Assembly (NCBI GenBank): GCA_000708835.1
Contig: DF237534.1
Location: 1 to 55,661 of the forward strand
Length of the DNA stretch: 55,661 bases
From: Klebsormidium nitens
Lineage: Eukaryota; Plantae; Klebsormidiophyceae
Reading direction: 5' to 3'
This document shows positions 7,301-34,200 of this stretch, piece by piece. The notes under the pieces were generated by a model. That model had not been told where the DNA came from, ran no database searches, and saw only the letters and a list, made by a program, of their open reading frames with translations. Position 1 is the first letter of the stretch. The number at the start of each line of letters is the position of its first letter. The translations under genes were made by a program, and so were the position numbers.

Positions 7301-10300
7301 CCCACCAACGTACCGTTTCTCAAAGCCCTCGCCGCCCACCCGTCTTTTTCCGCTGGTGACGTGGACACGGGCTTCATCGGACGTCACAGAGCGGCGCTGA
7401 TTCCCGAGCGGCTGTCCGAGGAGGGCGCGACCGCGCCGGCTAAACCCCTTTATGAGGGTTTAGAAACCGGGCGTGTTTACACCGAAGGAGAAAAGGAGGC
7501 GCTTGCGGTGGCTGCGGTTGGGCTGTGTTTGCAGGAACGGGTTACGTTGAGAGGTGGGTTATAAAGGGGTTAACGCATTGACGACGAATTCAAGAAGTCG
7601 TACTCAATCTGATTGCAACGCGTACCCCTTCAACAAGTTACAAGAGTGGATTGGGTTGAGAAGTGGGTTCAAAAGGCGGTCATATTTGGGCCGAAGAAGA
7701 TAGAAAATCCAAATACAATTCACTCACCCCGTCGTATCCCTCAAACAAGCACCAAGAAAGGACGTGCTAGCGCATTGGGAGAATGTCAGCTGTCGAACTT
7801 TGTCTGCCGCGTCCATTTTTCAGAGATGGGTTTGGGATGCGGTCACACTACGTACGTGATTTGGGGAGGCGAGTATCGTTCAGAGGTGGCTTTGGGATGC
7901 ACTCATGTCCAGAGATCGGTTCGAGAAGATGCGAAGCGTTCAGCTGGGCTTGGGATAAAGTCGATAAATGCTTTGTTTCTCACGAGTAAGTCATGTCAGA
8001 AATTGTTGAGTTTCTCTCGGGAAAGGGAACAGAGGAGCCATGCCTCCTCTCACCAAGTGAAGGAGGGGGTTTGTGTGGTCAAGCGCTCTTCTCGCTCCCG
8101 GTCCACGATCCGCCTTCTTCAAAAAATGTGCGTAATGAGGCCCTCCATTTTGCAGACACTTCTCTTTGATAGGCTGTGCTCGAGCACCAACGATTGAGAT
8201 CGGCCCAGCCACTTTGTGCCGCTGCAGGTTATTGGCGCCTTCTGACATCGTTGGTTCCGACTAACCCAACCGCTTTCAAACGCTCATCCACCATGATATC
8301 CCGCATTCTGCGCCACTGTCGCGAGGCCAAGAAGAGCTCCGCCCCCCCCTCAACAAACAGCCATACCTATGTCATCTGAGGACTTTGGTCCGCTCTACAG
8401 ATGATACGCTATGGAGCGCCGCTGCCGGAGTCCGCTTGAACACCGGCTTCTCCCAACCGGTCGCCCTTCAACCGGTCGACGAGGCAGCAGGCCCGGGCGA
8501 CCTAGAAGCCGCAGCCGAGCACGTGACGGTCGCCCACAATCGGGACGGCAGCTTCCAAGCGGTAAGACTTGTAGGACATGTGTAGGAAACGTCGGCCTGA
8601 ATAAGTAATCCGAAGGAATTGGAGTTTGTCAGATTCTGCCCAATCAGCGTTTGAGAATGGCACACTAGCTCTTGGCGACTGTGAGGGCAGAGACTTCGCC
8701 TGTGGTGACTGCATAGGTGCCGTCAGCTAGGCTTGCCGAGCGGTTTTCAACGTGAGGCTTTGACAGCTCATCGCTGATGTATGCTGTATCCACTAGGCTC
8801 TTAGGGGTGTTAGGTACAGGGAAGCAGATCTGCGATGCACAAGTCTTCGTCTGTGGTACTTCACTCATGACGCCGGATCCCATGTTGGGCGACGGAGCCA
8901 TGACGTCAGCACCGCGTCTCTTTAGTTTTCGGTTGCCAATTCTTCAGTAGAGAGTCCAAACCTACATCGGGCTTGACGATAGATGGTCTCATAGCTGACG
9001 TGTGCGTTCAACAAGGCGGCTTGTTTTCAAAAATTGAGGTGGAAGCTACCCCTGTTATGTAAGATTAACGAAAACGCTGATCAATTGGAAGCGTTTTGCA
9101 GAGTTTTGGCGACCACTGCTGTCTGGTGAAGGCCCAGTTGGACGCCGGAGACGTCAAGAAGCTGCGAGTAGAAGTGGACGGGCATGCAAAGACGGCGACG
9201 ATTGCCAGGTTTGAGCAGGTGAGTACTTGATGCCTTTTCGCGGAAAATTTCGAAATCTGGCGGAAGGAGATAACGTTCCCATATTGCATCCGCTCAATCA
9301 TACGTGAGCGATAGTAGGGCGATAGCGAAACATGACCAGTTCTGCTCACGGGGAGACTTCAGGTGCGTGGCTCCTCCAGATCTCGTCACTGCTTTTTTCC
9401 GACTGTTTGCTCATTCTTGCTTCCGGAGAATGAACGTCTCCCGGCGCTCCGTTACGCATCGAGATGAAAAGTGCGCTCCTCTTTATATGCCTATATTTCA
9501 AGTATGATAAGGTCATGGCCTGGGTCTACGGGTGGGTTAGGCTGGGGTTTAGGGTGGGTCAGTGTGCTGATTGCGTGAATCTGTTAAGGTAGATTTTGAG
9601 TTCTCTTTTACCCCCGGGACTGTTGTTTAACGTACGTAGATTCATCCTACCAGGAGTATCTCTTCTTCGCCGCTCTTTGAAACCCGCGGCTGGTGTCCGT
9701 GCATTTGTATTCATCTGCCTCAATCAACCTTCTATGCAAAGGATCACAGCGTTCACTAACATTCTGGCTGCTGATCACCCTTGGTCAAGCTGATTACGTC
9801 GATCTGGCTGATGACCGGCACTCAAACGGAAAATAAGTAGCCCCCTACTTTCTTTTCCATTCTGGACTTCGAATCTCCACCAGGTTTGGTTAACGACGTT
9901 CAGATCAAGTCAAACGGCACGTCTTAGATCCGCATGGTCCATTCGCCAATTCTTCGCCAATTCGAGTAAGCAGCACAACTCTGCCTTACTAAAGGACCTC
10001 ATCACGTCGTCCGAACTCGTTTCAGGGGGGCCGCTCGCACCTGCACCTGTGGCTGGGGGGCGCCCACTACCACTTCACCGTGCCCAAGGCTGCCCCCTGG
10101 GAGGAAGACGGCGACCCCCTGCAGCGGCACGGCAAAACGGTGACCCCCATGCCGGGGCGCGTCGTGAAAGTGGTCGCCGCGAAGGGCGCGCTGCTCAAGA
10201 AAGGCGACCCTATTCTGATCCTGGAGGCCATGAAGATGGAGGTGAGCCGTTGGGGAAGAGGTGCAGAATTTATTGGGGTTGCTGTACACGACACGCAACT

Positions 10301-10962
10301 GCAGCAAGTGCGTCACGTCTCCGTAGAGGATGCCTTCTGAACGGCGCGCATGCCGATTGAGTGGAAAGGCCTTTTTAGCGACCTCTGAGCACTACCATTC
10401 GTACGATAGAAAAGTGGTGCACAGTTGTGGGTATTAAAAACCAGCCCGCCTTTGTGCATTCCGATAAACAAACGCCTGGTCAATGTTTAAGTCTTGATCT
10501 CAAGAAAATAAGGTACATAAATAATAAGGTCATCTTACCGGGCAAGAACAAACAAGACATCCTAACCCAAAGATTCACCCGCTCCGCACCGGAACCTACC
10601 CTAACCACCAAGGCTAACTCCACCCGTCCGCCGGGCTTGACCTTATCATTTATAGGGCTTATCATTCACAGATGAGTCTTAGCTGGTGCATGTCGATAGC
10701 CCGCGACTCTCAGACCGCTTCCCGGAAGCTCCGATGATCCAGTACCCCAACGTATGAATGGCCACATGTATCAACGTATTTAGCATGCGGTTCCCAAAAC
10801 TTCATTCTCGGTAACTCCCTTCAACTGCAGCACATTGTGCGGGCACCAATGGAGGGTCTGCTCGAGGCGTTGGCCGTGAAAGAGGGGCAGCAAGTGGAGG
10901 AAGGCGCGTGGCTTTTCGAAATGAAGGTGCGACGAACGTATTCCTCAATAGCGACGAGCTAA
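1395..10962 (+). CDS. MCCA: 3-methylcrotonyl-CoA carboxylase alpha (biotin-containing) subunit, about 828 aa, 13 exons, with a long N-terminal targeting-like extension
   Basis: Exons 1395-1832, 2444-2587, 3106-3227, 3484-3631, 3821-4033, 4471-4551, 5596-5800, 6424-6668, 7289-7553, 8401-8561, 9102-9218, 10026-10241, 10831-10962 join with consistent phases. Biotin carboxylase motifs: [97 protein letters not shown]. Biotinyl motif EAMKME. The VVPGYHG/EQAPE and [19 protein letters not shown] segments fit MCC alpha better than ACC, PCC or pyruvate carboxylase (from memory of these families). Confidence 0.9.
4815..5690 (+). repeat. Tandem array of six copies of [3' splice site + start of MCCA exon 7]; five degenerate copies and one functional copy
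   Basis: Units of the form cgcag|GCCGTGGGTTACGTGGGCGCAGGCACG begin at 4829, 4968, 5096, 5246, 5443 and 5596 (spacing 139, 128, 150, 197, 153 bp). Confidence 0.92.
7819..7956 (+). repeat. Degenerate 60-bp-period intronic tandem repeat (3 units) in MCCA intron 9
   Basis: ttcagagatgggtttgggatgc (7819), ttcagaggtggctttgggatgc (7879), ttcagctgggcttgggat (7939); exact 60-bp spacing. Confidence 0.6.
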
Positions 10963-14714: not shown

Positions 14715-17700
14715 ATGACGTCCTGTCAGCTAGGCCCTGGCACGATGAAGGACCAGGGTCCTGGGCGCGATGTTACACACGGGCCTTTTCCAACAGGCAT
14801 GCTCTTTGAGAAACCGGGGGCATGCACCATCACCCCTGTTTCCTCTGGGGTCAGCCGGCTGGCGGCGGCTGCCTTTACGTGCTTTGCACGTGGGCGGACT
14901 CGTTTCATGGTCTGCAGGACCAGTAGCCTGAAAATGAGTTTCTCTCAGGTGAGAACGCATGAACCAGGTAGCCTTTCTGGTTGAAACCTTCTGCTTGTGC
15001 ATTTTGATAAGCAAACGTCTCTCCTTACACGACCTTGTTTTGAGTGTTTTGAGACACGTACTTCTAAAAGAACAGGGTAGCTGCGCATTAGAGCCGCACA
15101 TCCGCATCTCTGTGAGTTGCTCTGCGAAGATGATGTCTGGAAGCGAACGTCAAGGCATGCCTTGGCAAACATCTCCCCTGGCAAGAAAGAGGCAGGCTGA
15201 TCTTAGCTGAGTTGTACATTGAGGAGCAGCACAAATGTCGAAGTAGGCTGGTTCCCATATGCAGCTATGTGAAGCTCGCAGATCCTCACAAGGCTTCAAA
15301 GTGTTTCTTGATCGTCTCGTTTAAACGCTTCCTCTCCTTACGGGAGCAGAAGCTTTCAAGCCGCTGAAAGTTGACGCATTTCAGAACAGGCCGTCTTCAA
15401 TCTCTTTGCGCCTCATGACATGGCTTTTGCTCGTCAAGTATTCTACACGATGGACGCAGGGCGTCTCCACACGGAGATAATCACAGTCGTCAAGAGCACC
15501 TGGATGTTTTCATTGCAGGATCCGATGGAAGTAGCCTTCCTTGAGGACTTCGAGAAGCAAAGCCAAAAGACGCTGCGCCTGGCGCTCATCTCGAGCGCGC
15601 TCATTATCTCGGTGTACATTAGCATTGGTAAGTACCGGTGACATTGGGTGACATCTTCCTCGCCAATGAAGTCTCATCGTTATTGGAGTTGCAGCTAGGC
15701 AGCGCTTTCAGATCTTGATGTCGAGTAATTCTTGACATTGCTCGTCGTCAGACCAAAGTACTGAGGAGGCTTACACACAGCAGAAAAATGGATGTACAAA
15801 CAGTGCCATACTGCATCTCGGTCCGCGTTGCACTGCACTACGCTGCCCTGCGCGGCCCTGCCCTGGGTAAATACTCTCTTCCGTTATGCACGAGCGGTCA
15901 AGCCATTGTCCTTTTGCTCTTCAGAGAAAGGCCTACGGAAAGGAGCGTCGCTCCATTCTGATAACTTGGAAACCTGACGCGGATCATACTGCCTTTTTCA
16001 CAGACTTTCTTTCCTTGAAGAGCAAAAAGATGTTTCACCAAGTCCTCGTGGCCAGATGCATCCTCTGCACTTTCTGCTTCATTGCGTACGTGGCCTCCTA
16101 CTTCCCGCTCTTCGGTTGGAAGGTGAGGATAACCTCGGCATAAATCTTGTTCTTCACTCGTAGGGTGGCAGCATGCCGGGCTTTGCGCTAAAGAAGTTGC
16201 TTACTCAATGGCTTGAAAAGGCTTTGACGAAATGAATGATAGGATTTCATTCCTGTCGGACAAAGATCGAGAAGGTTTAGCCAGCTGATTCAAGCCAGTT
16301 CCTCTTAATACTTGAGGGATGAATTCTCTTTAACGCTCCTGGTAATTTTTCTGTATCTTTGACAGTGGTAAAGCCACATTAATGGATTAAATATTGAGAA
16401 AGTCAATGAATCAGCTCCTCTGCAGGCCTTATTGGTAATCAGTCGCGGGTGTGCATTGATTGAAGTATTCCTCCTCTTTCTTGCAGAACTGGCAGCCGTT
16501 CACATTCTTTTGCTGCTTCAGGTTAGTATATTGTCCCTCCCTCCACCGTTTCACCGTACTTTGAATGCAGCGGAACGTCCTTCCATGCATGCAAGTACTT
16601 GCAGGAGCGTTGATCGAGTGTAAAGCTTGATGGACACTTTCAAAGGATTCTCAGAAATCTCTCCAAGACCTTAAGATGCACTCTGTATCTTATCCTCATA
16701 TGAGATGCCACTTTGTACGTGAAACGGTTCTGACCTTCCCGTAAGTGCCTGTGCAGCATTTCCGTCGGATCGAGCATGCTGCCAGCCGTGTTCAGCAGGG
16801 TGGCAGGTTTCCTGGCCCTCTTCCTGGCTCTCAGCTTGACGTCGGGCTTTATCAGACTCCGCACGTCATACGCGTGCCTCATTCTTATTACTACCATCTC
16901 CGTATACACGATTGCCGGTCATTTTGTCCAACGGCGAGGTACCCTAGTCGACCAGATGCACAGTACCGACGAAAAGGCTTTTGTGTCCCCTGCGACAGTG
17001 CTCGTGAGCTTTATCAGCCCTCCTTTCTGTCCATCTAAATGAAATCTGCTTTACTGATCCATGCACCATCTGAGATGCTATTGCTAGCACTCCACTCAAA
17101 CTCCGGTTTGAGCGGCAGATTTTGCCGTCAGCCGAGCTGCTGTACGATCTCTGATGTTAGATCCTCCTCAGCTCGAAGTTGGGGTCCTGCTGCTAGGCTT
17201 CGCACTGAAAACACTGAATTTGTTTCTCCTGACGCATTCTCTGTCCTGCAGATGGCCCTAGTAGCGGCTTGGCTCATGTGGTCGTCCTACCTGTTTGAGT
17301 GCTACGCTCGGAAACAGTTCCTAATCCGCTGGGAGCTCAAAAGCACGGAGAAGTCCAACTCTGCAGCAGATCAAGCCTATGACGCGAAGGAAGCGAAATC
17401 TGCCTTCATGTCAAACATGTAAGTGCATGTAAGCATGCGAAGCTGCGAGAAGGATGACTCTACGAAGATACCAATAAAGCCCGAGGATCCGCTCTTATCG
17501 AACAAGCACCAGAAGCTTGTTCCTTTCCAAATGCTGGCAGTGGATCGAAGAACAGCGGACTGTACCCTGGATTATCAAATGCTTGTTTGCTCTGATATTT
17601 TGTCAGCCCTTATGTTGTGCTCAAGCCACAGCATTCTTCGCTTGTGCAGGAGTCACGAGATTCGGCATCCGATCATCGGGATTCTAAGCTGTGCTGAGCT

Positions 17701-20700
17701 CCTAGATACCACGGAGCTGACGTCAGAACAGCGGGAATCGGCAGCTATCATGAAGAAGGCTGCAGAGGACTTGCTCAGTCTCATCAACGACGTGCTAGAG
17801 GTCAGTGACAGCTTGTAACACTCACAAAACGTCTTCCGTTATGCTTTCGACGGTAATATGCATTGAATGTATGCATGATCTTCTCAGCCGCGAAGAGACG
17901 GCGAACAAAACCTGCGCCACTCTCGGCATTTGGCGATAACGAATGAGAGACTATAGGCCGAGATTGTTCAAAAGTTCCAAGAGTCTTGAAGGATTGACGG
18001 AAAGGGGCTGCCATTTACAATTCACTACAATTAATGAACAGGTTCAGACACGTCAATAACGTCAAAGTAAGATTAAGGTCACTCTACAGTTCCAAACTAA
18101 TACACGTGGGTCGGGTTTCTTTGCAGTGGAGCAAGCTGGAGGCCGGTTGCTTCAGGCTGAATCTCAGGGTAAGGAACAACTGCCATTGAGTGCCGGAAGC
18201 GTGCAGCCTGATGTGGAACAGTATGCATCAGGCTGCCTTTACTCTCAACTGAGATAGACTGACTTCTGCACTCAGCAAGTTCTCTCTTGTAAACGTCGTT
18301 CATTGCACGAGTTCCTTAGGTGTAGCCAGCCCTTATTCAAACATTGCAAAGAACAGCAAAGGAACAGACACTTTCGAGTATTTTTTCGCACTCGGTTTCT
18401 CAGTCTCGTCATCCATTCTCGTTGTACAAGGGACACTTAAGACGTCGTTCGAACAGATTGTAACCAGCCACTAGCCTGGCTTTATGATCGCTCAATCTCG
18501 TCATCTTCATGAATACTGAAGTTCGAGATCGACTCTTGCTTTGATTCACTGGGTAGCTTCAGATACCGTCAAACCTGAAAAGGAACAAGCTGCGCTGGTC
18601 TGTTCCTAGTAAACCGCTTGGCTTGGAAGGCTTCCCGAACAAGATGATGGATTCCGGATAGAAAAGCTGGCTTGTTTGAAGCGAGCATGCGTCGAATCTC
18701 TGTGTTGACTTGTAAGCATGTCGTTTTCTGCAGGGCTTTGACCTCCTCGAGCTGATTGAGGATACAGCAGACATGGTGGCACCATCTGCGTTTGCAAAGG
18801 GTTTGGAGTTGGTGACAATCATGCAAAGCTGGACGAAGAGAGCCGTCGTCGGGGATCCACTGGTGGTGCAGGGCATTTTGATTAACTGTAAGTTTCTGCG
18901 TCCTTGCAAGAATCCGGGCTTGAGGTGGTCCACGTCTTCTGGCGTTGCCACCGGTTCTTCTCCCTTTCCCGCCAATTGCGAGGAGTGCTTATGTCACATT
19001 TGATAGAGGTTAGCAAACTGGGAGGGAGTGGAGGGTCCCGGAGCGTGCTGCTTTTCTGCTGCTTTCTTGGACTGCACACAGCATGACTTGCCCTAAACAC
19101 AATCAAGAAAAGATGTCTAAAACAGCGGCGATGGTAGTCCAGCATCTATCGAGCCAGAAAGATGCAACGGAAGGCTGCTTGGGTGAAGGCAGTCATTGAG
19201 TCTCTGTCAATACCATAATGCTCTGCATGCAAAATGCCAGCGAACATCTGATTTGATGTCTCACGCGCAGTGCTGGACAACGCGGTAAAGTTTACCAAGG
19301 CTGGAGGCCTCGCTTTGGTCGTCGAGGAGAAATCCGGGCCAATCGCGCGTGACGCACTTGTCATCCGCTTCTCCTGCGTTGACACGGGTAGAGGAATACC
19401 TGAAGACAAGCTAAGGGTGCTGTTTCGAGAATTCTCCCAGGTCGACATGCGGTTCTCCAGGGAGGTGAGACTAAATGTTCGCTTAGCTGTTCTATCGGGC
19501 CAGCCTTCCCACTAGATGAAAAGATTCAATCTGATTCCGTCAAAGAACACCGTTGAGCCAGGAATTACTTCAGCCCTCGGGCGCTAATGCCCTTCTGCCA
19601 GATTGCACAGCTTGATTCCATAATATTTGGGACAACTCTACTGTCGATCTTGCGAACTGCGAAACAATTGAAGCAGGGTAAACCTCTAGGAGGACCAGCA
19701 CAAAGGAAGCATCTTCCAAAGCCTGAGTGCCAAAAGGTCCAGGCGAGCTTGTTAAACCCTACTCCGACTAGCTTCTAAATCATGAACATGCTTGCAGATC
19801 GAAGGTCTCGGATTGGGCCTCGCGCTTGTGCTCGGATTTGTAGACATCTTGGACGGTCAACTGGGCGTGTCGACCAATTCCAAAGCACAGCCACATGTTC
19901 CTACTGGCTCCATCTTCTGGTTTGAAGTGCCGTTCCGGGCATCGACCTCCGGGCCCGTTGTTCGTTCCGACGAGAAGTTGCGGAAGTCGTCACCGCGGGC
20001 GCCGGTTTGCGTGTTGTGCGTCTCGCCGAGTATGCTCGTGAGGGAGATGCTCAAAAACAACCTGGAGCCCGACGCCGGAAATGGTTGGGAAATCATGGTT
20101 GGGAGTTCGCTAGGCGAGGTGATTGATAGCAGCGATTATAAGCAACAGGAGTGGTCGGCGGCCGTCGTAGTCACGCAACGCGTCGAGGATTACGGAGAGC
20201 TGAAAGGGCGGGTTGAAACGAGTCTGAGAGAGAAAGTGCGATGGTTGCTGCTCACTAAGCAGGAGCAGAAGAAGCCCAACGGCTTTTGGGGGGTCATTGA
20301 GCAGCCGGTCCGGAGGGCAAACTTAGTCCAGGCGGTGGTCGGAGCGTGCAAGGACGCGCTGCTGACAAAGGAGCCGCCTCTAGTTGCTTCAGTGCGGACC
20401 ACCGTAGACCTAGATTCCAGAAGGAGGGGTTCCTCCAACATACCGCGTTTGTCGTCCCTCGACTCGAAAGTCTCCTCGGCCCGCACGTCGCACCGGATGT
20501 CGGGTCGATCCGGGGAGGCGGAGCCAGAGCAAGCCAGTCTTAGAACGCTTCCAAGCGTTAAGGAAGGCGCCGAGCGCTCGCATGCGGCGGCGAACGGAGA
20601 CTTGAAGCGGCACGAAGTGCTGCTTGTGGATGACACTGCGGTGACGCAGATGCTCGGCAAACAGGTTCTTTCGAGCGCAGGATTTGCGGTTGAGGTTGCG

Positions 20701-23700
20701 GGGAACGGTCTCCAGGCGGTGGAGAAGTGGCGGGAGAAGGAGTACGATGTCGTTCTCATGGACATCGAGATGGAGGTGAGCTTAAATTGCATTGCAAGTG
20801 CTATGCTCGCTGTGCCTTGGACAGCGACAAGGGTTTTTGATGTGGTCGAAAGATTGCTAATCGAAGCATGTAAATGCATCGTTCACAGTCCAGACTAGAA
20901 CTGCTTCCCGCCTTTTTCCTTCAGGGGCTTCATTCTGAAGGTATCAATGATGTTTCAGGAAGAACGAGACGCATGCATGTTTTTCCTCTGCTGGAAGCTT
21001 CGAGTGAGTAGGGTTCCCTTACGGTTGCGGTTTCGAAAATGCCGATTGGCAACAAGATATCAACCTTTTTAGCAGCAAAAAACTTGACTGGCCAATGTGA
21101 GGTTGCTGGATGGGTCCTCAAGGCAAGCATAGAGCCTTCTTACTCCCTTCGCGCAGATCTTGAACGGGTATGAGGCCGCGGAAATGATCAGGAAGGAGGA
21201 GATCGTACGGGGCCGCCGACGAGTGCCGATCATCGCGCTCACGGCGCACGACAGCCTGGGTCCGCGAGGCTTCCTTATGAACGACAAGCTGACTCGGCCA
21301 GTTTCCAAAGCGCTCATGGTAGAGACCGTGAAGACCTGGGCGCGCGGTTTCCAGCTTGACCTACTCGGGGCCAATCCTCTTCGTCAAAAGGTGCCGCTTC
21401 TCGAGAGGGACCAATCGAGGCGAAAGACGCACATCAACACCTTTCACATTGAGAGGGCTTTGGTGAGCATGAATCCTTGCTCCAAGGTGCTACACATACT
21501 TGACTGTGGTTAGATCATGTCCTTTCTTTAACAGAGTAATGTGCAAAGGTTTGGTACCTCCAGCACCCTTTGCTTATCCGATGCGGATGAAATAAGGACA
21601 GGAGCTCTTTACTTTCCATATGAAACTGTTCTTGATATTCCTTGCTTCGGTTTTGTGGGGCCCTCTATTTGCGGGCGAACGCTGCCAGTTCCGGACTGTT
21701 TACAGCTTCTCTCGTCAACCTCTGATGATCCAGAGTTTCGGACATATGCTGCAGAGCCCGATTCAAGCTTAGAGAGAGGGGCTCAAGACGATTTCCTAAG
21801 TAATACAAGTAAACGTTGCAGCGGCCATGGCTATTCTCTAGTGTTCTTTGTGCTAGCTCTCACTCACGTACATGAACATGAAGGACCCCTCGCCCGAAGT
21901 TTTCGTGTGAAGTCAAGGAGCTACCTTAACGTTTCATGCTCTTTGCAGGGCAAGATTCAGAGTCGAGCCAGCTTCGGCGATTATACGGCGTCCGACGACG
22001 AGGATCCACCATCTGTTCCGGGCTCGGAGACGGAGTTGCCTGTATATAATAGGCCCGCGGCGCACAGTTTAGACGACATTCGGCAGCCTCCAAGCCTGGA
22101 TGATTTTGAAACATTGGTCGACAGTAGAGCGGCCGACGCGCAAGCATCGAGCGCGGCCAATCGCGCAGCGCCTATCTCGGAAGCGCGAGCAATGGGAAAC
22201 GGACCGGGGACCACCGATAAAGGTGGGGATAGACGGGGGAACGACATTCGTCCTCAACGGGTCCACTTGTACGGTCCCTCCAAGTTCCGCGACGACCTCG
22301 AAGCTCTGCAGCTGCTCGATCTGAGCCAACCAGGTCCGCCGGAATCGGGGTCCGGCGGATCTGGTCTTCCGGTGGTTATCGAATCAGACCCAGGCGAATC
22401 GGTGTCCGCCAGGCCAAGCGCTGCGTCTTCGATCCCAGACTCTATCAGCCAGAGAATAAGGGTCGCCGGATCCGTCGGATCAGTGGATAGTCTGAGCGCG
22501 CGTTCCCGGCAGGCTTCTGAGCCGTCCGAAAAAGGTGGTGTCCGAAAACATTCTCTGCCGGCAGCCGCGGGTGCTCCACGTGTTGCCGACGCCACAGTTG
22601 CAGCGGACACGAGAGACAAGAGCGACAGCATGTCCAGTGTACGGAGCTCCGAAACGTCGTTCTCAATGCCGGAGGAGGCCCAGGCGTACTACCAGACGGT
22701 ACGTATGCCCTTCTGCCCTCGTTTGCCCGTTGGACAGTAGATCCCAAGGTGATCGGTCTGAATGCTTATGAGTAAACAATTAAGATATTGCTGCAACCCG
22801 CTTGAGTTTGTGTTTGGCACAAAGAATCTCTCCTCCAGCTTCTTGTCTACGTTCTCTTCACAGCGCTCTCTTTGCTCGATCTGCGAGCTCTATATGGGTG
22901 GCCTGGTGGTTCACCGCGCGTGCATTGGATCGAAAGAATTTGAGATTTGTACTTCAAGGGACATAACGGCCGCGTACTCGTGGCAGCTGTTAGCTTGGGC
23001 GCTGAGGTCTTGAGGTAGAAACTGGCTTGAATGTCTCTAGAAGAGGTCACGAAGCTGGTCTGAATGTTTTGCGAGTTATGTGCACGGGTCCAAAGTTTGA
23101 CGTCTGCACAGATAGTTCCGACGCTTTTCGCTGCAGGCTCAGGGGGACTACTCCTGGAAACTTGGAGATTCGAAGTGGCCCGCCACGTTCATGATCGGGA
23201 TTTTGGCCGGGGGAATGCTCGCATACCCACTGCTTGACTACCTTGCATCAGGGTAAGCAGATCATACGAAGTATCCAAGACAACATTCCAATGGGTTGTG
23301 TCTCCATTCGTTCCTGTGTAGTCTCGCTCTTTGCTGAAGCGACTCAGCGCCTTGCCAGCACCTCTCCGCATCCAAAACTCTTCCTTTCAACCCTTGTCTC
23401 GGCACGTCGGCGCTAAAGGCTCATTCCTGGTGCACTTTTGAAATGAGTACTCAATCCAAAGTCAAGCTGCCGAAAGTCAAAGACTGTTTTGACAGAACCT
23501 GCGGCCGCCTCGGAACGTGATGCACTCCTCGAAGTGAGCAAAAATGCAAGGCTCCGCGTGAAGCTTCTTGCTGACTATTGAATATTCCCTCAAATTACTG
23601 CAGATACTACTCGCGGAACCAGACATGCTGGGTCCTCCGCTGCTTTTTCACCGTCATCTTGCTGGGAGTCGCAATCTTCGGCACGCTTCCAGTCTTCACC

Positions 23701-26700
23701 CGCTGGATGGTAAGCAGCTGGAACTCATGCCCTTAACATCATTGCCGGGAGATCTGATTTTTAGCCATTTTTACCATCTTCCGGGATGCTCACGGTTGAA
23801 GCTTTTGAAATTTTTTACATGGCAGTTTTGCAGTTGATTTGCTACACAGCTGGACATTGTTCAGCTTCATACATCATAGGACGAGCTACAGTCGAACATA
23901 AAGAGAAGCGGATAGATGCTTATTCGGGCTCAGTTTTGCTGGCAACGTAGTTATCTGCTGATATCCCACTTCTGAGTAATCTTTTTGACTTCTTACGAAG
24001 CACGTGTTGCTAATGGGTGTCTGTCTGAGTTCTCCACCAATTCTTCAATGAAAGTGACGAGCAATTATCTCCTTTTGCAGGCCAGGAACCCATTCCGAGG
24101 GGAGGTCTGCCTTGCAGGGCTGATGATCTTCACGCTGGCCGGTCTCATGACCATCTGCTGGTTCGACGAGAAGCTCAGCCCTTTGAACCTCGACATGTGG
24201 CTCAGCTGGTTCTACCTTTTGGTCTGCATCAATCTTTTCTGCCGCTTCGCCGTTTCCTCGGCGGCCTCGGTGATCCTCATGGTTGTGTACATGGTAAGAA
24301 TGCATCCGACAATTTCTTTGACTCCTTAGCTGGGCGGTTCTCAAAGCTCGAGGTACTGAACAAAAGGAAGAGAAAAAAGGGATCTGGCTAAGCTTCCGAC
24401 AGGAACATTAACGCATCTGCTAGTTGTGGCCGGGGCTTACGGAAAAACCACTAATCTAAACGCTCGAAACTCTTCTAAACGTGGAGGTATCGCCCGGCAC
24501 ACAACCAGACAGGCGGAGAACTTGCCATTGGTTCTCACCTTTTACTAGTTACAAGATGCACTAGTAGAAGTTTTGGTGGAGCTACAAAGATGAGTGACGC
24601 AATCTGAGGTCCTGAGTGCCACATCCTCCAGGGAAACTTCCCTTGGCGAAGCAGGATCTACCTTGGCTCTTATCCTTCACTAGAGTCCATTATCATGCGC
24701 CAAGATGCTGAAATACACGAGTGAGATCTTGAACTGTTTCCTTAGCTTTCCGAAAGGAATCGAATCAACTTTTGCATTGAACTCCCGAACTCCCGTTCGT
24801 ACATTTTGGTCAACCTACGATGGATCGAAATATCGGGTCCTTACCCAGATGATTCTTAATCGGCAGGGTGTCCTACTTTGCAGGCTGGCTCGATTCACCA
24901 ACAGCAAGCAGGATGCGTCCCCAAAGTTGCAGCGAAATCGAGCGAGGGATTGTACGTCAGCAACGAGAGCTTGCGCAGTATCATCTTCGGGTACTTCACG
25001 GTCGCCGCCTTTCTCATCTGGCAGGTATGAGGCCCTGCTTTGTCCGCTTCCGTGCTAAGATCATATTCCATCAAGGGACTGAAGAGATCATGTCGGTGAA
25101 ATCAACGTACTGCCGTGAAATCAGGTCTACGGGCTCCACCCAAAATACCGTAACAAGCTGCTGATGGTACATTCTCAGAGCGACTCGATGCATTTGACTT
25201 TTTCGGGCTATTTGGCAGCGCCGCACTGCCTGTCAGGCGCGTGTCGGAATGCCACGTGTTATACGATGCCGGTAGCGAGGGGCTCTGGTTTTGGACCTGT
25301 CAGGAAGATTGCTGACATTTGATTTGGGGAGACGGGCAGGCACGCGCCTTGCTCTTATACGCTTCTTCTAACGTCACTTAATCCGTCAGCAGACGTCACT
25401 TTTAAGCTTTAGTGCCCTGCCGCGCAGTGTTGCTCGTACCTCCTGGAAAGAAGCGCCATCGGTGAGCAGTCCCTCACCGAGTCGGTGCGCGCCGCCCACG
25501 CGGCCGCGCGGCGCGCGCGACACGCGGAGGCCGCGAACGTCGCGACCACGGAGTTTTTGGCGACTCTCAACCACGAGATTCGAACGCCCTTGGCGGGAAT
25601 CATCGGGATGGCGGATCTGCTGATGGACTCAAAGACGGAGCTAACAAAGATGCAGGTGAGAGAGGCTTCTCTTGATGGGATAGCTAGCGTTGAAGTCATG
25701 CGGGGAACTGCTTGCTCGTTGGAAGATCGACATGCCATACGGAATGACGTTAAGTCGAACTTGAAGGTCTCTGCCGGCCAAGAATGTTTCTCCTTTTTCA
25801 GAATTGGGATTGAAGTTGTCATGTACCATTTAATAGAATCTAAAAACGAAGGCAGCCGAATAATTCTGGTGCAATGAAGATGAGAAGTACAGTAAACTCA
25901 CGAAGGAGCATCAAGGAATTTGGTTCCAGAATACCCCTATGACAACTCCCCTGGAAGACCGCTTGTAAATCACGCTTTACAGCAAGTTATGTCCTGCTCA
26001 TTGCACCCAAACTGATGCACCTTAACGTTACGATGATCGAACCTGCAGGAGGAACTTCTGCACACGGTCCAGCAGTCTAGCAATCAACTGAGCGCGTTGA
26101 TTGACCAAGTCCTGGATTTGAATCGTATCGAAGACGGGCATCTGGATCTGAAGGTAAGACCCGAAGCCTGGAATCAAGGTCGAACACTTTTTCTCTCTAC
26201 TCGCCCGCTATTCTCAGAATCTCCTATCTCAAACTGAAGCTTCGGTCACACGAAGATGTCCCTGCTGTCAAAGATCTCCCACGAGATACAAGGAAGGAAC
26301 AACGCCTGCTCAAAAGAGGTCTTGAAAGGAAGCGTTGTCAGTCTCTCAGGGACAATGTTTGCGATGAAAGGAGGAGTTGCAGATGATGACAGCGCAGGCA
26401 GCCGAAGTAAGCTGCCGACAGAAGCATGTCAGAAGAAAAGCCCTTCAAATATCCTTGCGTTGCTTGAGCAACCCGGTTCGTCAACCTGGTTGGCAAAGTA
26501 AAGCTGATTGATTCAGATCCCGACTCGCTTCACAGGAGTCCCGCCTGGACCTGCGGACGCACCTCGAGGAGACAGTGACGTCAATGAGCCACGTGTGCTT
26601 CGCGAAGAACGTGGAGCTGTATTTGGACGTCCGGCTAGAGCACACGCACTTCCGCGGCGACCCGGTCCGGCTGCGCCAGATGCTGACCAACTTTCTGTCA

Positions 26701-29700
26701 AACGCCATCAAGTTTACGGACAAGGGCGAGATCAAAGTGTCCATCGAAACGGTAGTGGAGGACGACGGGGAAGCGCAGCTGAAAGTCTCGTGTACAGATA
26801 CAGGTGAGAAAGTAATTATCCCATGTACCACCAGCTGTCTTGTGTACTACTGAAGAGCATTACGGCATCGGCCTTGTGCAAGAGCGGAGCGGGTACTGCG
26901 GGTCCTTCGGCGCAAAAAAAGATAGAAAGAAGTCAGAACTTCCTCTGCAGGCAGCGGGTCACGCAGGGTCCACCGGAGCGCCTCTTCGATTACTCTGTAA
27001 AGTCATCCAACAGAACGTTGTTTTGTCACCTCGCTTGGATATCGACGGAATGCTATAATCCAGAGCGGGCAAAGCTTCCGCAAGCCCAAAGACCCTGAAC
27101 TTCCGAGACTTGCAATTCGCTATCGTCCTCTGCAAGCTGGGCCGAAGACAAAAATAAGGTGAAGCGGCTATTTGTGCGCGTCAAGCGGGCAACCAAAGCA
27201 TCGTTATCAGCTAGCTCGTCACCTTTCTGAAGGACGACTGCAATGTATCTAACTCGACCATTGTTCCGTCTGCAGGTCGGGGCGTGTCACAAGAGCAGGT
27301 GGAGCGGCTCTTCGTGCGCTTCAAGCAGGCGTCAAACATCGACCTGAGCGACATCCGCTTGCAGCGGCGCGGCCAAAAAGGGACTGGTCTGGGTCTCTCC
27401 ATCGTCAAAATGCTCGCGGAAAGGATGGGCGGAAACTGCGGCATGAACAGCAAACCCGGGGAAGGCAGCCAGACCTGGTTCACGGTCAAGCTGGCGAAGG
27501 CCCCGGACGATGCCCCGAGAGGGGGGGTGATCCTGAGGCGCAATCATCCCCCCTGCAAAGTGTTGGTCAGCCACCGGTTGTCGTCAGTCGGGCTGGTGCT
27601 GTGCCGCTACCTCGCTGAGTGGGGCTACGATGCGACGCTGGTGACGTCGGCTGGCGACGTCATTGCGCTATTTGAGGGGGGGTCCGACAAGGGGGTCCCG
27701 CCGGGGGGGGGCGACGAAGCGGTCTCCCCGGGGGGGAGCCAACCGGCGAAAGCCGCGCCATTCAGGGTGATCGTCCTAGACGGGTCACTGCTGGCGTCCG
27801 GGGGACACGTGCTGACGGAGCATCTGGTCAGCAGCAAAGTGGGGGTGGTATTGATGACTAACCCGGGGATCACCCGGTTGGAACCGGAGGTGGAGCTCCT
27901 GGACCCGATCATCTGCAGGAAGCCCGTGCGGTACGTACCGTTCTTCGAGGCGGTGGGTGCCGCCCATAAGCAGGCGGCACCGGTTGCCGCGGGCGGTCCC
28001 AAACCCGTCCTCGACCGATCCGCCAGCACTTCGTGGGCGATGTTCGGTGCGACCGGCATCAACTTCGGGGGCCTAGTTGCGGCCGCGGACGTGACCCCCC
28101 GGGCCGAAGACTCAGAGCCGGGGGGAGTGCCCGGTCAGGAAGACCACCTGCCTGACCCAGAGGTCGTCAATTTCTCCGCGCCACCTCAGTCCGCCCCGTC
28201 CGTTCCGGAGCGGAACGAAGGCGCGGATCAACTACCGGGCTCAGTCCCGGACTATGCTTCTCCTCCCGGGGGGGCGGTTCAGAGTGACGGCGAGGCCCCC
28301 CCGGAGCGGCGGCGGTACGTACTGGTGGTGGAGGACCATATGGTGAACCAGCGGATCGTGTGCAGCATCCTGAAGAAGTTGGATGCTGACCTGGAGGTGG
28401 CGAACAACGGGCTCGAAGCGGTAGCGGCCGCGGAGAAGGGGGCGTATGACGTCATCCTCATGGACTGCCAGGTGGGTGGCTTGTATTCCCTTTGTTTGAC
28501 AGGGTCAGCGAGAAGGACACTCGGTCTCCTTGAGAAGTAGCTATTGTAGTGCGAAGCGTGTCAAATCCATGTCGCAATTTCCTATCTCTCTACTTACGGG
28601 AAATTTCAAGCTCGGAGTGGTAACGGAGGTTTGAAAGAAGTGACCAGTGTGATCTGAGAGCAACACTTCAACTTCCCCTCCGAGAGCTTGACAACCGAAG
28701 CCGTCGCTTTTGATATAGCTGAGCGTAGCGGAGTCTTGAAACATTTGTCGAGGCGGATGATGCGAAACCTAACTTACGGACAAGGAAAGCTCACAATAAA
28801 CAACAGTTCGTGCGAAAAGAGCATCAAGTGGGATTAGTAAGATGCCAAGCGCCGTTGATCTCCTTGCAGATGCCGGTAATGGACGGCTTTGAGGCCACGC
28901 AGCGAATCCGCGAGCGCGAGGAACAGACGGGCGGCGCGCACGTGTGCATCATCGCGCTTACGGCGATGGCGATGCCCGGCGACCGGGAGAGGTGCCTCAA
29001 CGCGGGCATGGATGACTACATGGTACGGCCTTTCGACTTTTATTGTGAACTCACATTATAGATTAGACAAGGGCGCCCAAGCTTGTCTCTTGAACGGATG
29101 GATTGTCTTGAAAAGGGAGCCGAATTCAGCTTTTGAAATAGGAGCGGTCGACGACATTACGATCGCCCCAAGAATGATGTTGCGCGTCCGCAATGAGGGA
29201 CAGCAGAACACTGCTCCTGCTCTCTGGTGACTAGAACGGAACGGGTCAGAGTACGTCAGCCTGACGATCGAGTCTCCTTGCGGCTTGTGCCGGAGACTCC
29301 TGCCACTTCTCCTTGGCAGGTTCGGGTCTCGATCCTCGTAGTCTTTGAGCTGGCGCTGGTTCACATTCCTCAAGTGCAGTACACTTCAATGAGTTTCCAA
29401 CATCCGGAGACTTGCCTGCCGCTGTAGAACCCAGAATTCATGGATGCGAATGGACTTGGAAGAACCTGTCCATCGCCCAGCTTGGCTTCCTACATATTAC
29501 GTAGCTCTTTTTTCGCCTTCTCGAAACTACGTGGGCAAGAACTCAGAGAATGCGGCCAGCTTGTGAGAGTGCCCAGGTCAATGTGACGAAAACGAGTCGC
29601 AACTGTGTTGATTCTGTCGCTTGGGAGAACTTCGAAACAGGTTTGAGGTCCCGAGCGCGGTTGAGGTCAGCGCCTCCAAAGCATTCTCTGAGACTAATCT

Positions 29701-29901
29701 CCTTTACCATGGATCACCGTTTGTAACTGGATTTGTAGGGCGACTCGCTTAAGCTCTAAAGCGCAGGCGCAATGAGGAACCAACTTTGAGAAACCTTGAT
29801 TTCGTTGCTTATAAAGTGCTCGAATCTTGTTGCAGACGAAGCCCGTTAAGAAAGACGCAGTGCAGGCGATGCTGGCGACTTGGACATCTGGACGAAGGTA
29901 A
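14715..29901 (+). CDS. Membrane-bound double hybrid histidine kinase: 6TM-HisKA-HATPase-REC-like-REC, linker, then 6TM-HisKA-HATPase-REC-like-REC; about 2001 aa, 23 exons
   Basis: Exons 14715-14948, 15519-15627, 16004-16122, 16487-16521, 16757-17003, 17252-17418, 17650-17800, 18127-18168, 18734-18887, 19271-19464, 19798-20775, 21157-21390, 21949-22698, 23137-23252, 23604-23709, 24081-24293, 24884-25024, 25428-25655, 26049-26153, 26536-26803, 27276-28471, 28870-29022, 29836-29901 sum to 6006 nt with matching phases and no internal stop. Module 1: [38 protein letters not shown]...MDIEM. Module 2: [36 protein letters not shown]...MDCQMPVMDG...MDDYMTKP. The true start codon and small TM-region exons are less certain. 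Confidence 0.88.
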
Positions 29902-30860
29902 TAAAATAGGTCTTGTACTGCAAGTTGGAAAGGGTCCGTGGGCTCCGGCCTAGACAGTCAAATCAAAAGCAGCATGCATTGAGGGATATGTATTGACTTC
30001 CAAGAGTCGGCAATCAGTCGAAATTTGCAAGCCTTACGTATCACAAGCAGATCGCGCGTGGGCGTTGCGGCAGGGCGGCTGCCAGGATGAGAGTCAAGCT
30101 AGATCAACTGTACGAGGATGAAAAGTAAAGGATATCATGGGTACTGTAAGGGTAGGCGAGACAAGGTGTACTTAAAAAACTAGCGGCGCTGCGGATTGCA
30201 AATTTGCAGAGACTGCTGCCAGTCAAGCTTTAGCAAGCTAGCTTTGTTCTGTTGCTGACGTTCTCTTTCAGGGCGTGGTTGTAATGTTATGATGTAATCC
30301 TATCTGCCCGCAAAGTCGTCTTGCGATCCTTATTTGGTCGATCTCACTGTTACGTACCCGTTCATCCACTCACGTCGCGAGTTCCGGGGTATCCATCTAG
30401 ATGCTTGTTGGCATGCTATCGAAGCATCCAGAGCTTCTCGGACGCCCCATGTTCAAAAGCGATTTGGGCCGCCATTGTGAAAGTATTAGTGGTCTCTGAT
30501 CAGGATTCATTCTGATTCGTGTCACTGGCAAGTTGCTCTCTCAAATAGTCTACACTCCCACAACTGAGAATGCTGTTTTCACTCATGAGTCAAGGGCGCC
30601 GGGCGATATACGTCATGGCATCATTGCATACGAGTATGCAGACTGATTGAGAAGTAGTGTATTGTGAGGGGTGGTCTGGGACGCGGTAAAAGCCCTTACA
30701 TGCTGCGTTTCTAATTTGTCTTACTTCCGACGTCACTGAAAGATGCCGGGCCCGATTCACGATCTGCACAAATACGTGGTGCGTGGAACAGCATTCGTGA
30801 GATGCAGCTTTTAGAATGTCGATCACGCAAATTGAGGCGCAGGCCACCTCGAAGTGTTTT

Positions 30861-30895: not shown

Positions 30896-31266
30896 TTACT
30901 AGAGCCGGGGTACTGTTGATCTTTGGTGGTTAGCAGCGAGATTGCGCCGGCCAATCAGTGGCTGCCTTGAATGGCATGTGGTCTCGTCGGTGGGTACCGG
31001 TTGTAACTAGGTTGTTCATGCAACGGTTACTGTCGGTATAGTACCTACCGGTTTATAGCGGTACCAGTTTCGTGGGTCAGGATCATGCATGGAACTCACG
31101 CGTGATCCACCTGTTTACAGAATCGACAAACTACGACTTTGCTGCCGGCGCAGGGGCGGCCGTCTTGCTCTTCAACAGCGGGGTCAATGTTGAGGTTTGA
31201 CAGGCGCTAAGGGAGTTCCATTCGTCCCCATATCTGGAGACAGTTCTCTTCTCGTTTCCGTGTCCC

Positions 31267-34200
31267 ATGGAGACGTGGGCAGCTAGATGCACCTCATACA
31301 AGCCAACGCCAGCCTGCGGCGGTGCTTTGAAAAGGAGCAACCCCGATCAATGTACAAACTTTAGGCAGGGCCGTACACCGCATATGTCGGCAGTCAGCAA
31401 ATGCGCTTTCAACGCTGCTTTAATGTGTGATGGTGGTAAAAGCTTTCGCCCAGAGGCAACGGGAGCAGAGTTTCTGAAGCGTCTCTCAAGGAATTCTCTG
31501 GGGACATGTGCATCAGAAGCGCAAGTACACAGAGACACAAACTGCAGCTGGAAGAAGGGTTTCTGCCACAATTACGAACGGACGGAAGCGTCTGCGAAAG
31601 TGTGTGCATTGAGGAGAGATGTTGCCTCTCGAGCTGTGGCGTCCGACTCAGATCGGGGTGGAGACGAGAATGAAGGCCTTTCCGAAGTGAGCAGCCATTT
31701 TTCAATTCTACTACTATATATATACCAGCAGTACCAGCAGATTTAACGGTCTGGAAGTCACATAGCTTGAATGAAGTCACATTTCATCTACTTGGAAGCC
31801 ATCTTTGCTTAACTTTCTCTCCTTCTTGTGCCAGTTGTGGTGGTTGTGTCATTTCTTCCCTCATGTGCACCCAAGTGTCGCTTCCTGGGCTTGCCGAGTT
31901 GCTCAACAGCGATATAAGTGGTCAATCATGGTCAGCCTTTGGGAACTGGAACGGTTTGATCTAGTGTGTTCCTCAAACCTAGTTTGCGTAGCCCACTTTA
32001 CTCGATGCATTTCGTCTAATACACCTTCTCTTGAAAGACGTTTGCTCACAAATTCTGATCAACTCACTCTGCTTCGACCACTTCTAGTACCGCACTCTCT
32101 TTGAAATTCACTGCTTGACTCACTTCCCTTAACACACTGTGCTAAATTCACTCTACTTACTCCAGGTTCGGATCATTCTTGTGGAGCCTCGGGGCGCCTT
32201 GAATGTTGGGATGGTTGCCCGGAGCATGGCAAACTTTGGGTTAAGACACCTGGTACTGGTTAACCCCCAGGGAGAAGCTGCTGATTACCAAGGAGAGGAG
32301 GTAAGAGCCCCCTCTGAACTTCTCCTGATTCTGTTATCCTGCTAACCATCCACGGTGCTTCCGTCTAGAAAGTTAGTGCCTGGTGCAATAAGAGCCCAAG
32401 TGTACTTTTTTAGGCGAGCTGACACCTATGCAGTCTGCGCAGAAAGGGGAGTGCATAATGAAATCGAAGAACATATGACGGCCCCCTTGTTCATGTCACT
32501 TGTGCTAGTTCAGAAATTTTGTTTTGGACAATCTTCAAACCTCAACGGGCAGTGCCTAAAGCCATCGACAGGCATGTCACAGATTCACAGAACATGGTAA
32601 ACCGGGTTGCTAACCTGCCGTAACCAGGCCTGCAGAATGGCCTGTCACGCGGTGTCAATCCTAGAAGAGGCGACAACGGCCCCGACTCTCGCCGCCGCTC
32701 TAGCCGGAGTAACGAGAGCGGTCGCAACTACCGCCCGTCAAAGAGCCCCCCCGGCGCCCCCCTTAGAGATCCTGAAAAGCAGAACGGTGGGGGGTGGCCT
32801 GGATTGGCTGCTGGAAAATGACGCGGGCTGCTCGGCTATGATTTTCGGGTGAGCTGTCTTGTTTGGCAAACCCCCTGTTCATTAGTGTCTCCCATAGAGG
32901 GCAAACTTCTGAAGTCTTGAATACCGGGTCCGTGACTTCAGTCGAAGTGCGTACTTTGGATGCACAGCACAATGCATGAGATTATCGCAAAACTGACGGC
33001 TTATATAGGCTGGAAGCTCAGATTGACGGACGACAATTGCAGCTGCGGTTGTGAAAGGGACTGAGTGTGTCAAGTGAGACTTCAGCCGCGTTTGTCTAGG
33101 TCTCTGGTTGTTGCCCGGCGTTTGTCCATGTTCTCCCTACTACAGCCTGCTCGCTTTTTCAATGCGCCGTCGACAGGTTGTTCCCCAAGGATGGATATGT
33201 CGGGCAGTTTGCCAGATCCTTACATTAGAGACCAAAAATAGGCCCAAACAGCACGCCAAAGTGTCGCAGCAAAGCGTTCGTCTGCAAATGTTAATGTTTC
33301 CCGGGTCATGGCCAGCTTGTCCCTCGAATCTGTGAGCTTTCATACTGTCGAAGTTTTGGAGAAGCTGCCAGGAGGCACATAGCCTCAAAACATAAAGAAG
33401 CACTGAGCGTCTGAATCAAAAGGAATCAGGATACAAGGAAAAGGCAGGAAAGCAAGAAGAAAAAGGATTCTGCAAGGAAGCAAAAAGGGAAAGAGGACAC
33501 GAGTCGTGTCAAAGGGCCTGGGCAATCCGCGTATACTCCTCTTGTCTTCTTGAAATTAAAATCCAACTAGAATGTCCTCCCCCTTGGAAGTTTTGCGATG
33601 AAACGTTCAGTATGGAGCTAAGGATTTTTCGTTTTCGAAGCAGGGACCCGCTGGGGTTAGTAGGGGTTTAGTCGCGTAGGTTTCGATCTCGGGTCAACGC
33701 GGTCAACCTGGTAAGGGTTTCGGCGAATGGAATCATGATTAAAGATGCCGTTTTTGGAACATGTCATGTCAATAAGGGAGGCAAATAGTGACGTCAGAAG
33801 TAGTGTATGATTGATTTGTTGTTCCTTTTGCAGTCGGGAAGATAGCGGCTTGACCAACGACGAGCTGAGCTTTGCGCAGCGCACGCTCATGATACCCAGC
33901 AGCCCGGCCTACTCTTCCCTGGTGGGTTAGGACTCAAACCATCTCTTAACCCACATTTCATCGCCCTTGATTGACACTTCCGTTTTCGATCCCGTCGTCC
34001 TGGTGCGCTTGCTGGGCGGTTTGAGCTGCCGTCGATGACTGTGCTCTTCTTCTCTGCAGCACAGCTGAGCGCTTACGTTTTCATGTCCTGTACTTCTAGC
34101 ATCATCACGAGCTTAAATGATACTCAAGAAAGACCCCCTAAAGCCGTCCGGCTTTCTGGCACTCGAACAACCGAGTCCAGGTCGAGTCGGAAGACTAATC

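Follow-up and report, generated by a model that had tools for sequence, protein, structure and literature searches.

A gene of Klebsormidium nitens predicted to encode a dual hybrid histidine kinase with a membrane domain in front of each kinase unit

Introduction

Histidine kinases work as homodimers. When two kinase units are joined in one polypeptide, the question is posed whether two independent sensors are held at 1:1 or whether the halves pair with each other. This question is raised by a gene at 14715-29901 on the forward (+) strand of Klebsormidium nitens contig DF237534.1, which was analyzed over a window of 55,661 nt (the window being the whole stretch of DNA). An original prediction, made from the DNA sequence, had described the product as a single chain with two full sensor-kinase-receiver modules and a membrane layout like that of the membrane adenylyl cyclases, and had held that no characterized family has this architecture. 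The latter is too strong, as dual histidine kinases are a named class: they carry two HisKA-HATPase_c-REC units per polypeptide, as does the gene model described here. Such proteins have been catalogued in eukaryotes and are barely understood; those recognized include Tco2/Tco4 of Cryptococcus (fungal group XII), DhkD of Dictyostelium, CowcHK5 of Capsaspora and KniteHK1/2 of Klebsormidium (PMC6324907, PMC4965123). The reading that we favor, and to which we assign a probability of roughly 0.65, is that of a single nuclear gene for a dual (tandem) hybrid histidine kinase of about 2025 residues, in which each module would pair with the same module of a second chain in a side-by-side dimer.

Gene structure and conservation of the exons

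The window is eukaryotic in character, with a G+C content of about 50%, numerous introns and two stretches of N. A gene model was built by reading the three frames together with the splice signals. It comprises 23 exons, every one with an AG acceptor/GT donor, and the splice borders are mostly of the form (c/t)ag/.../gt(a/g)ag. The joined frame is free of stops: from the ATG at 14934 to the TAA at 29899-29901 there is one open reading frame of 5859 nt, coding for 1952 residues. The stop-free passage from the first receiver through a linker into a second membrane domain, as originally predicted, is thus found within a continuous 23-exon frame. In the order of the protein, six hydrophobic segments are followed by HisKA, HATPase_c, a receiver-like domain, a receiver (REC1) and a disordered linker of 290 residues, after which the series is repeated up to the second receiver (REC2). 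The two series are referred to as module 1 and module 2.

Relatives were sought with a 441-residue exon (27215-28537) in a set of 5.8 billion proteins, and the contigs of the matches supplied the orthologous loci. The search returned two exon-sized open reading frames (P0001 and P0002) and otherwise distant, mostly bacterial kinases. The best full-length matches were bacterial, with E about 1e-34, and this exhaustive search yielded no close annotated eukaryotic protein. Two of the loci, L001 and L085, are Logan contigs from one sequencing run (about 85% protein identity); L003 and L004 stem from two JGI metagenomes (about 50-85% identity, depending on the exon), and a 543-bp ENA contig is the fourth source. 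These four sources are all that were found, and each is unannotated; the family is very rare among public sequences and so is easily missed. In what follows, the three taxa are the window, L001/L085 and L003/L004. Searches with other parts of the gene did not widen this set: a scan of bacterial and archaeal genomes with one membrane exon of module 1 gave no match, profile searches with the membrane exons of each module recovered close relatives only, and a metagenome scan with an alignment of the receiver-1 tail gave 80 bacterial loci that matched through generic receiver motifs, none with the membrane or linker parts.

At the DNA level, the alignment between the window and L001 is confined to exons and thereby provides an independent footprint of the exons. 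When used singly, every exon could be aligned over its full length with L004 and/or L001, which represent two further organisms. The smallest, a micro-exon of 35 nt (16487-16521), encodes an 11-residue peptide that is 100% identical in the distant relative L004. The exons of receiver 2 map on L001 and L003, and those of the module 2 membrane domain on L001 and L004. At the 5' end, an in-frame ATG at 14715 lies upstream of that at 14934 and extends the protein by 73 residues to 2025. Exon 1 (14715-14948, +) then codes for an N-terminal extension, includes the second ATG at 14934, ends in MSFSQ and is followed by the donor GTGAGA. In L085 this exon is open and free of indels, its ATG is conserved and an in-frame stop lies upstream; the substitutions between the window and L085 number 9, 6 and 19 at codon positions 1, 2 and 3, respectively. 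Because exon 1 is open and conserved in L085, with substitutions mostly at the third codon position, a start at 14715, as had been suggested before, is plausible.

The junction between the two halves

Whether the locus holds one gene or two depends on the junction between receiver 1 and the linker. Receiver 1 and its conserved tail of 40 residues (20611-21462, +) are encoded by the end of exon 19798-20775 and by exon 21157-21462, the tail ending in ...HIERAL. The original prediction had placed the donor of the latter exon at 21390. Its other borders at the junction (21157, 21949, 22698 and 23137) were retained, and the end of the exon was moved to 21462. A donor at 21390 was rejected on the following grounds: the next 24 codons (21391-21462) show a ratio of nonsynonymous to synonymous substitution rates (dN/dS) of 0.047, the DNA conservation with L001 extends to 21467, and a strong donor of phase 0, GTGAGC, is present at 21463 (TTG/GTGAGC). 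Since the donors at 21390 and 21462 are both of phase 0, the stop-free reading is unaffected by the change.

The receiver-1 exon of all three taxa ends in ...(F)H(I/L)ERAL, and a GT follows in phase 0. The sequence 3' of the donor is unrelated between the taxa and contains an in-frame stop soon after the donor in all three. The junction intron that follows (21463-21948, 486 nt, +) holds no block conserved with L001 between 21468 and 21934, and the next conserved block begins exactly at the acceptor (21948/21949). Here the linker exon (21949-22698, +, 250 residues) starts, again in phase 0, and its peptide opens with GKI(Q/R)xRAS in all three taxa (GKIQSRAS in the window). Going 5' from the acceptor in L001 and L003/L004, the frame is closed by a stop after 16-24 codons, and no ATG intervenes. 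Within the linker exon no in-frame ATG is conserved across the three taxa, and the positions of the Met residues vary. The exon is open, with a length that is a multiple of three, in all three (250, 267 and about 256 codons). Its composition, rich in Ser, Ala, Asp, Pro and Gly, agrees with the Ser/Pro/acidic linker that had been described at 21949-22698, and no Pfam domain was found in it. The dN/dS of 0.43 is as expected for a disordered but coding spacer. The exon also carries a conserved motif of 21 residues, and its final 14 residues lead to the donor at 22698.

Because the phases of donor and acceptor, the ends of the conserved blocks and the closed upstream frames agree in three taxa, in-frame splicing of receiver 1 to the linker, and onward into the second membrane domain, is well supported at the sequence level. 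The in-phase junction, conserved in this way, supports the proposal of one chain with two complete sensor-kinase-receiver modules, and a single fused gene appears quite probable. An intron of 72 nt (21463-21534), with 21535-21948 coding, was also considered for the junction and was rejected, as the stretch is unconserved and its frame is closed in L001. A run of 139 stop-free codons at 21532-21948 (+), in the frame of the flanking exons, is present within the junction intron; it too is unconserved and closed in L001, and is probably due to chance.

An alternative is that of two separate tandem paralogous genes, the first ending at the TAG at 21511 and the second having its own promoter, with the joint frame unused or used for minor read-through. 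The position of this TAG would suit such an arrangement: retention of the junction intron would add just 16 codons 3' of the donor before the stop is reached. In addition, the linker exon holds ATGs that could serve module 2 (the Met residues in ARAMGNG and DSMSS), and module 1 starts with MSFSQ just 5' of its own motif preceding the first transmembrane segment (TM1), so that translation could once have begun at the homologous place in module 2. Matches derived from RNA that decide either way were not obtained. However, the conservation of the receiver-1 exon ends at the donor and not at the stop codon in both relatives, and that of the linker sets in at its exact acceptor with GKIxxRAS invariant in the three taxa. 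The shared phase 0 of donor and acceptor, the upstream stops without an intervening ATG in L001 and L003/L004, and the varying Met positions of the linker likewise speak against a separate second gene, and we consider two genes unlikely.

Kinase cores and receivers

Pfam HisKA, HATPase_c and Response_reg were each found twice on the + strand and in the same order. The kinase core of module 1 (17650-19971, +) has its HisKA part in exons 17650-17800 and 18127-18168, with the codon for the phospho-acceptor His at 17654-17656, and its HATPase_c part in exons 18734-18887, 19271-19464 and the start of 19798-20775; the Pfam E-values were 3.8e-11 and 1.1e-07, respectively. In module 2 the core (25461-27556, +) comprises HisKA in exons 25428-25655 and 26049-26153 (2.5e-10 and 3.8e-06; phospho-acceptor His codon 25572-25574) and HATPase_c in exon 26536-26803 and the start of 27276-28471 (6.3e-09 and 8.1e-13). 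The H boxes read SHEIRHP in module 1 and NHEIRTP in module 2. Module 1 further has the N box DNAVKFT, the G1 box DTGRGI and the G2 box GLGLGL, and the ATPase boxes of module 2 are present as well, including GTGLGL. Both cores retain the H, N, G1, F and G2 boxes, and each half is apparently a complete and catalytically competent unit, as judged from these motifs.

The receivers were matched by Response_reg with E-values of 6.6e-11 (REC1) and of 3e-08 and 8.6e-11 (REC2). REC2 (28313-29901, +), encoded by the end of exon 27276-28471 and by exons 28870-29022 and 29836-29901, the last including the stop codon, is canonical, with ED, LMD, ALTA and DDYMTKPV. REC1 shows DD, LMD and ALTA, and in its K-P motif the Lys is replaced by Arg (LTRPV, with LTRP at 21292-21303) in three taxa. 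Because this Lys-to-Arg change is conserved, REC1 may be an attenuated or regulatory receiver.

A further domain of receiver fold is predicted between kinase core and receiver in each half. An AlphaFold2 model of exon 27278-28471 contains a (beta-alpha)5 unit between the kinase and REC2, with a predicted local distance difference test score (pLDDT) of 70-80. When this receiver-like domain of module 2 (27557-27976, +) was compared with the PDB by Foldseek, the top matches were receiver domains with TM-scores of 0.66-0.78 (normalized to the target), and ShkA (6qrj) was among the matches. The corresponding segment of module 1 (19972-20362, +; approximate borders, inside the large exon) aligns in sequence with that of module 2 and has a Thr in place of the phospho-acceptor Asp (AVVVTQ). 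The protein would hold four receiver-fold domains, the pseudo-receiver of module 2 being assigned from the model and that of module 1 from the alignment. Pfam Receiver_CRE1 was not detected.

Membrane domains

The membrane domain of module 1 (15519-17418, +) is encoded by exons 15519-15627, 16004-16122, 16487-16521, 16757-17003 and 17252-17418, and that of module 2 (23137-25460, +) by exons 23137-23252, 23604-23709, 24081-24293 and 24884-25024 and the start of 25428-25655. A hydropathy scan gave six peaks in each region, centered near residues 35, 65, 96 (weak), 113, 138 and 178 in module 1 and near residues 1113, 1147, 1180, 1211, 1226 and 1275 in module 2, with loops of at most 26 residues. 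This agrees with the roughly 6+6 hydrophobic segments and short loops that had been read from the sequence. For module 2 the number of transmembrane segments is expected to be even, because the membrane region sits between a cytosolic receiver and a cytosolic kinase. The homologous pairs of motifs before the first and after the sixth segment, noted in the original prediction, are present and conserved in the orthologs. Exon 17252-17418 encodes TM6, the 18-residue post-TM6 motif and the signaling helix of module 1, and the end of the module 2 membrane domain is a stretch of 16 residues at the start of exon 25428-25655.

The membrane exons gave no Pfam match of any kind at E<=0.1 in an exon-by-exon scan, which has a lower sensitivity, and sensor domains of the CHASE, GAF or PAS type, whose absence had been pointed out before, were found in none of the exons. 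The inputs of the plant cytokinin and ethylene receptors (CHASE and the three-helix ethylene-binding domain) gave no Pfam match in the same scan.

Several paired cysteines are conserved in or near the membrane. FFCCF, in the micro-exon 16487-16521, places a Cys pair in or adjoining a membrane helix and is identical in the distant relative; W(Q/S)CCSYLLE (25428-25445) holds a conserved pair at the cytosolic end of TM12. Other Cys residues that are conserved occur in CWVLRC and LVCINLFC. Judging from the sequence, the conserved membrane Cys could bind a metal, take part in redox sensing or be acylated.

An extra micro-exon of module 2 near 23834 was rejected, as the length in L001 is incompatible with the frame and the window has no donor there. 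A conserved intronic patch is nevertheless present at 23815-23860 (about 5390-5440 in L001), with an acceptor-like ...tgcag/TTGA and, in L001, a GTAAGT after 20 nt. It may represent an element of the intron or the remains of a micro-exon.

Relationship between the halves and mode of dimerization

From TM1 to the kinase the modules are collinear, with 26% identity (E 9e-33), and the receivers of the two halves are 35% identical. Compared on their own, the membrane regions show hardly any similarity (blastp E 0.11); a local hhalign comparison gave a weak alignment of 175 collinear columns with 23% identity, E 0.007 and a probability of 5%, and the global mode gave no meaningful alignment. Three introns coincide in position and phase: after TM2 (W[KM]/, the slash marking the intron), at the end of DHp (L[RK]/) and in the receiver (/xxxxG[YF]E). 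Between the Ser of SYL[FL]E and the phospho-acceptor His, both halves show the same spacing of 46 residues, without gaps. The simplest reading is that the halves are old paralogs, which would have arisen when a kinase gene with introns was duplicated and the copies were later fused.

According to the dual-kinase reading that we favor, the halves would have been brought into one frame by a splice that links the end of the receiver-1 exon to the disordered linker exon of 250 residues. Each half would consist of a membrane domain with about six helices joined by short loops, a signaling helix, DHp/HisKA, HATPase_c, a pseudo-receiver, a disordered spacer and a true receiver. Each membrane domain would sense a signal in or near the membrane, and each kinase core would autophosphorylate and pass the phosphate to its own receiver, from which it would be handed on to histidine phosphotransfer (HPt) proteins. 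The most likely dimer would be a side-by-side one in which each module meets its like in the other chain (1 with 1, 2 with 2), and in this way a single polypeptide would couple two sensors at a fixed 1:1 stoichiometry.

A number of observations weigh against this picture. The count of transmembrane segments comes from the hydropathy scan alone; the third segment of module 1 is weak in it, and the Lys-rich first loop of module 1 is a poor fit to the positive-inside rule. In a tree of the kinase cores, built to tell a duplication from a fusion of unrelated kinases, the halves are not placed as sisters, yet no well-supported branch lies between them. No spliced transcript-derived protein was found in the set of 5.8 billion proteins with the 441-residue exon or the linker exon as query; the latter matched the L001 open reading frame alone. 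Module 1 might also be made on its own through retention of the intron, or module 2 from a promoter within the gene. Finally, the side-by-side homodimer is an analogy taken from general histidine kinase biology.

The halves could instead pair within the chain, with the DHp domains forming one four-helix bundle below a receptor of 12 helices, as a pseudo-heterodimer of the kind seen in membrane adenylyl cyclases. Formally the predicted topology equals the M1-C1-M2-C2 order of those enzymes, and the long disordered linker would let the halves fold back together. The equal spacing of 46 residues between SYL[FL]E and the His would allow the signaling helices to pair in register, although simple paralogy also predicts equal spacing. 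Paralogous DHp domains usually do not heterodimerize, which counts against such pairing, and the halves are just 26% identical over the region from the membrane to the kinase. Such an intramolecular pseudo-dimer had been put forward in the original prediction. The cyclase hallmark of complementary loss in the two halves is absent: full sets of the H, N, G1, F and G2 boxes are found in both, unlike the situation in the cyclase C1 and C2 domains. Six-helix kinase receptors of the CqsS and LqsS type can functionally substitute for cyclase membrane anchors (PMC4821796), which speaks for this model. The bundles here have no sequence link to cyclase membrane domains or to the cyclase-transducing elements (CTEs), and the E-x3-R-x2-F-L motif is confined to one half. 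Taken together, we regard intramolecular pairing as quite improbable.

The likeness to membrane adenylyl cyclases concerns the formal layout, in which a bundle of six helices with short loops, predicted from hydropathy in the present protein, and its cytosolic catalytic part are followed, after a long linker, by a second such pair. The catalytic fold is different here, there are no complementary half-sites and the bundles do not match in sequence. In the cyclases the link from membrane to catalytic domain is defined by a CTE with the center SxL/MP or NxLP, and the M1-C1-M2-C2 layout arose by duplication and fusion (PMC9552081). After TM6 and TM12 of the present protein neither SxL/MP nor NxLP is found, and the segments lead directly to the H box. 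No class III cyclase domain was detected in any scanned piece, the cytosolic parts being HisKA, HATPase_c and REC. A sequence search of the PDB with the TM6 exon gave no match at E<=10, and E-x3-R-x2-F-L occurs in module 1, whereas its counterpart of 14 residues in module 2 deviates. The idea of a cyclase-type six-helix bundle thus finds no backing in these results, and the likeness is one of analogy and not of family membership. A true single-chain pseudo-dimeric receptor kinase, in which the two diverged six-helix bundles would form one ligand-binding unit of 12 helices and the DHp domains an intramolecular four-helix bundle, would be a histidine kinase counterpart of the cyclase design, with an independent origin by duplication and fusion; we consider it likewise improbable. 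The history suggested for the two halves would still form a natural parallel to the duplication and fusion from which the membrane adenylyl cyclases arose.

Comparison with known kinases

In DhkD both kinase units lie behind a single-pass transmembrane segment with an extracellular PAS/PAC (PMC3783435). The present protein differs in having a second polytopic membrane domain between the units, and PAS/PAC was not found by Pfam. The literature search found no eukaryotic dual kinase described as having a second polytopic membrane domain in this position; the comparison with KniteHK1/2 was made at the level of their class. Most likely, the new feature is this second membrane domain between two kinase units, and the protein is an unusual variant of the dual histidine kinases.

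Among the distant matches of the 441-residue exon, two kinase cores were present in 24 of 143. One of the distant proteins, P0023 (1937 residues, from an ENA metagenome contig, prokaryote-type), resembles the gene described here in that one chain carries two membrane-anchored sensor modules, each with a kinase core and receivers. It differs in its classical periplasmic sensors with two transmembrane segments (2TM-HAMP and 2TM-CHASE) and in a terminal Hpt, and its membrane parts show no sequence similarity to those of the present protein. As the layout of P0023 indicates, the present protein is not the only case of two sensors on one chain.

For each half taken separately, the best functional analogy, by description of the layout, is with CqsS/LqsS, in which a six-helix receptor with short loops is joined directly to DHp and a lipophilic ligand is sensed in the membrane (PMC4821796); those proteins are bacterial and have a single module. 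The gene would supply a eukaryotic example of such membrane-embedded sensing by histidine kinases. The domain order within each half, DHp-CA-receiver-like-REC, is also that of Caulobacter ShkA and of plant AHK2-4/CRE1. In contrast to these, the unit is present twice in one chain here, and CHASE and Receiver_CRE1 were not detected.

Other features of the window

Past the stop codon of the kinase gene, 29902-30167 is still conserved with L001 (75% identity) and is probably 3' untranslated region. Conservation with L001 resumes at 31259-31714 (66%), probably in the next gene, which has no Pfam match. The region upstream holds, at 1344-10357 (+), a gene with several exons that belongs to the biotin carboxylase family, with matches to Biotin_carb_N, Biotin_carb_C and Biotin_lipoyl; by its sequence it is like the alpha subunit of a methylcrotonyl-CoA or acyl-CoA carboxylase. 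Two assembly gaps, at about 36.98-37.49 kb and 46.09-46.67 kb, account for 1077 N in total, and the second interrupts a long open frame at 45133-46740 (+) with Gly/Pro-rich repeats of the type GGGQPDKAS. On the opposite strand, a frame of 382 codons at 53642-54787 (-) contains a CxC4 cysteine cluster associated with KDZ transposases and probably represents the remains of a transposon or a domesticated copy, and an open frame at 39757-40137 (-) carries a SnoaL-like domain.

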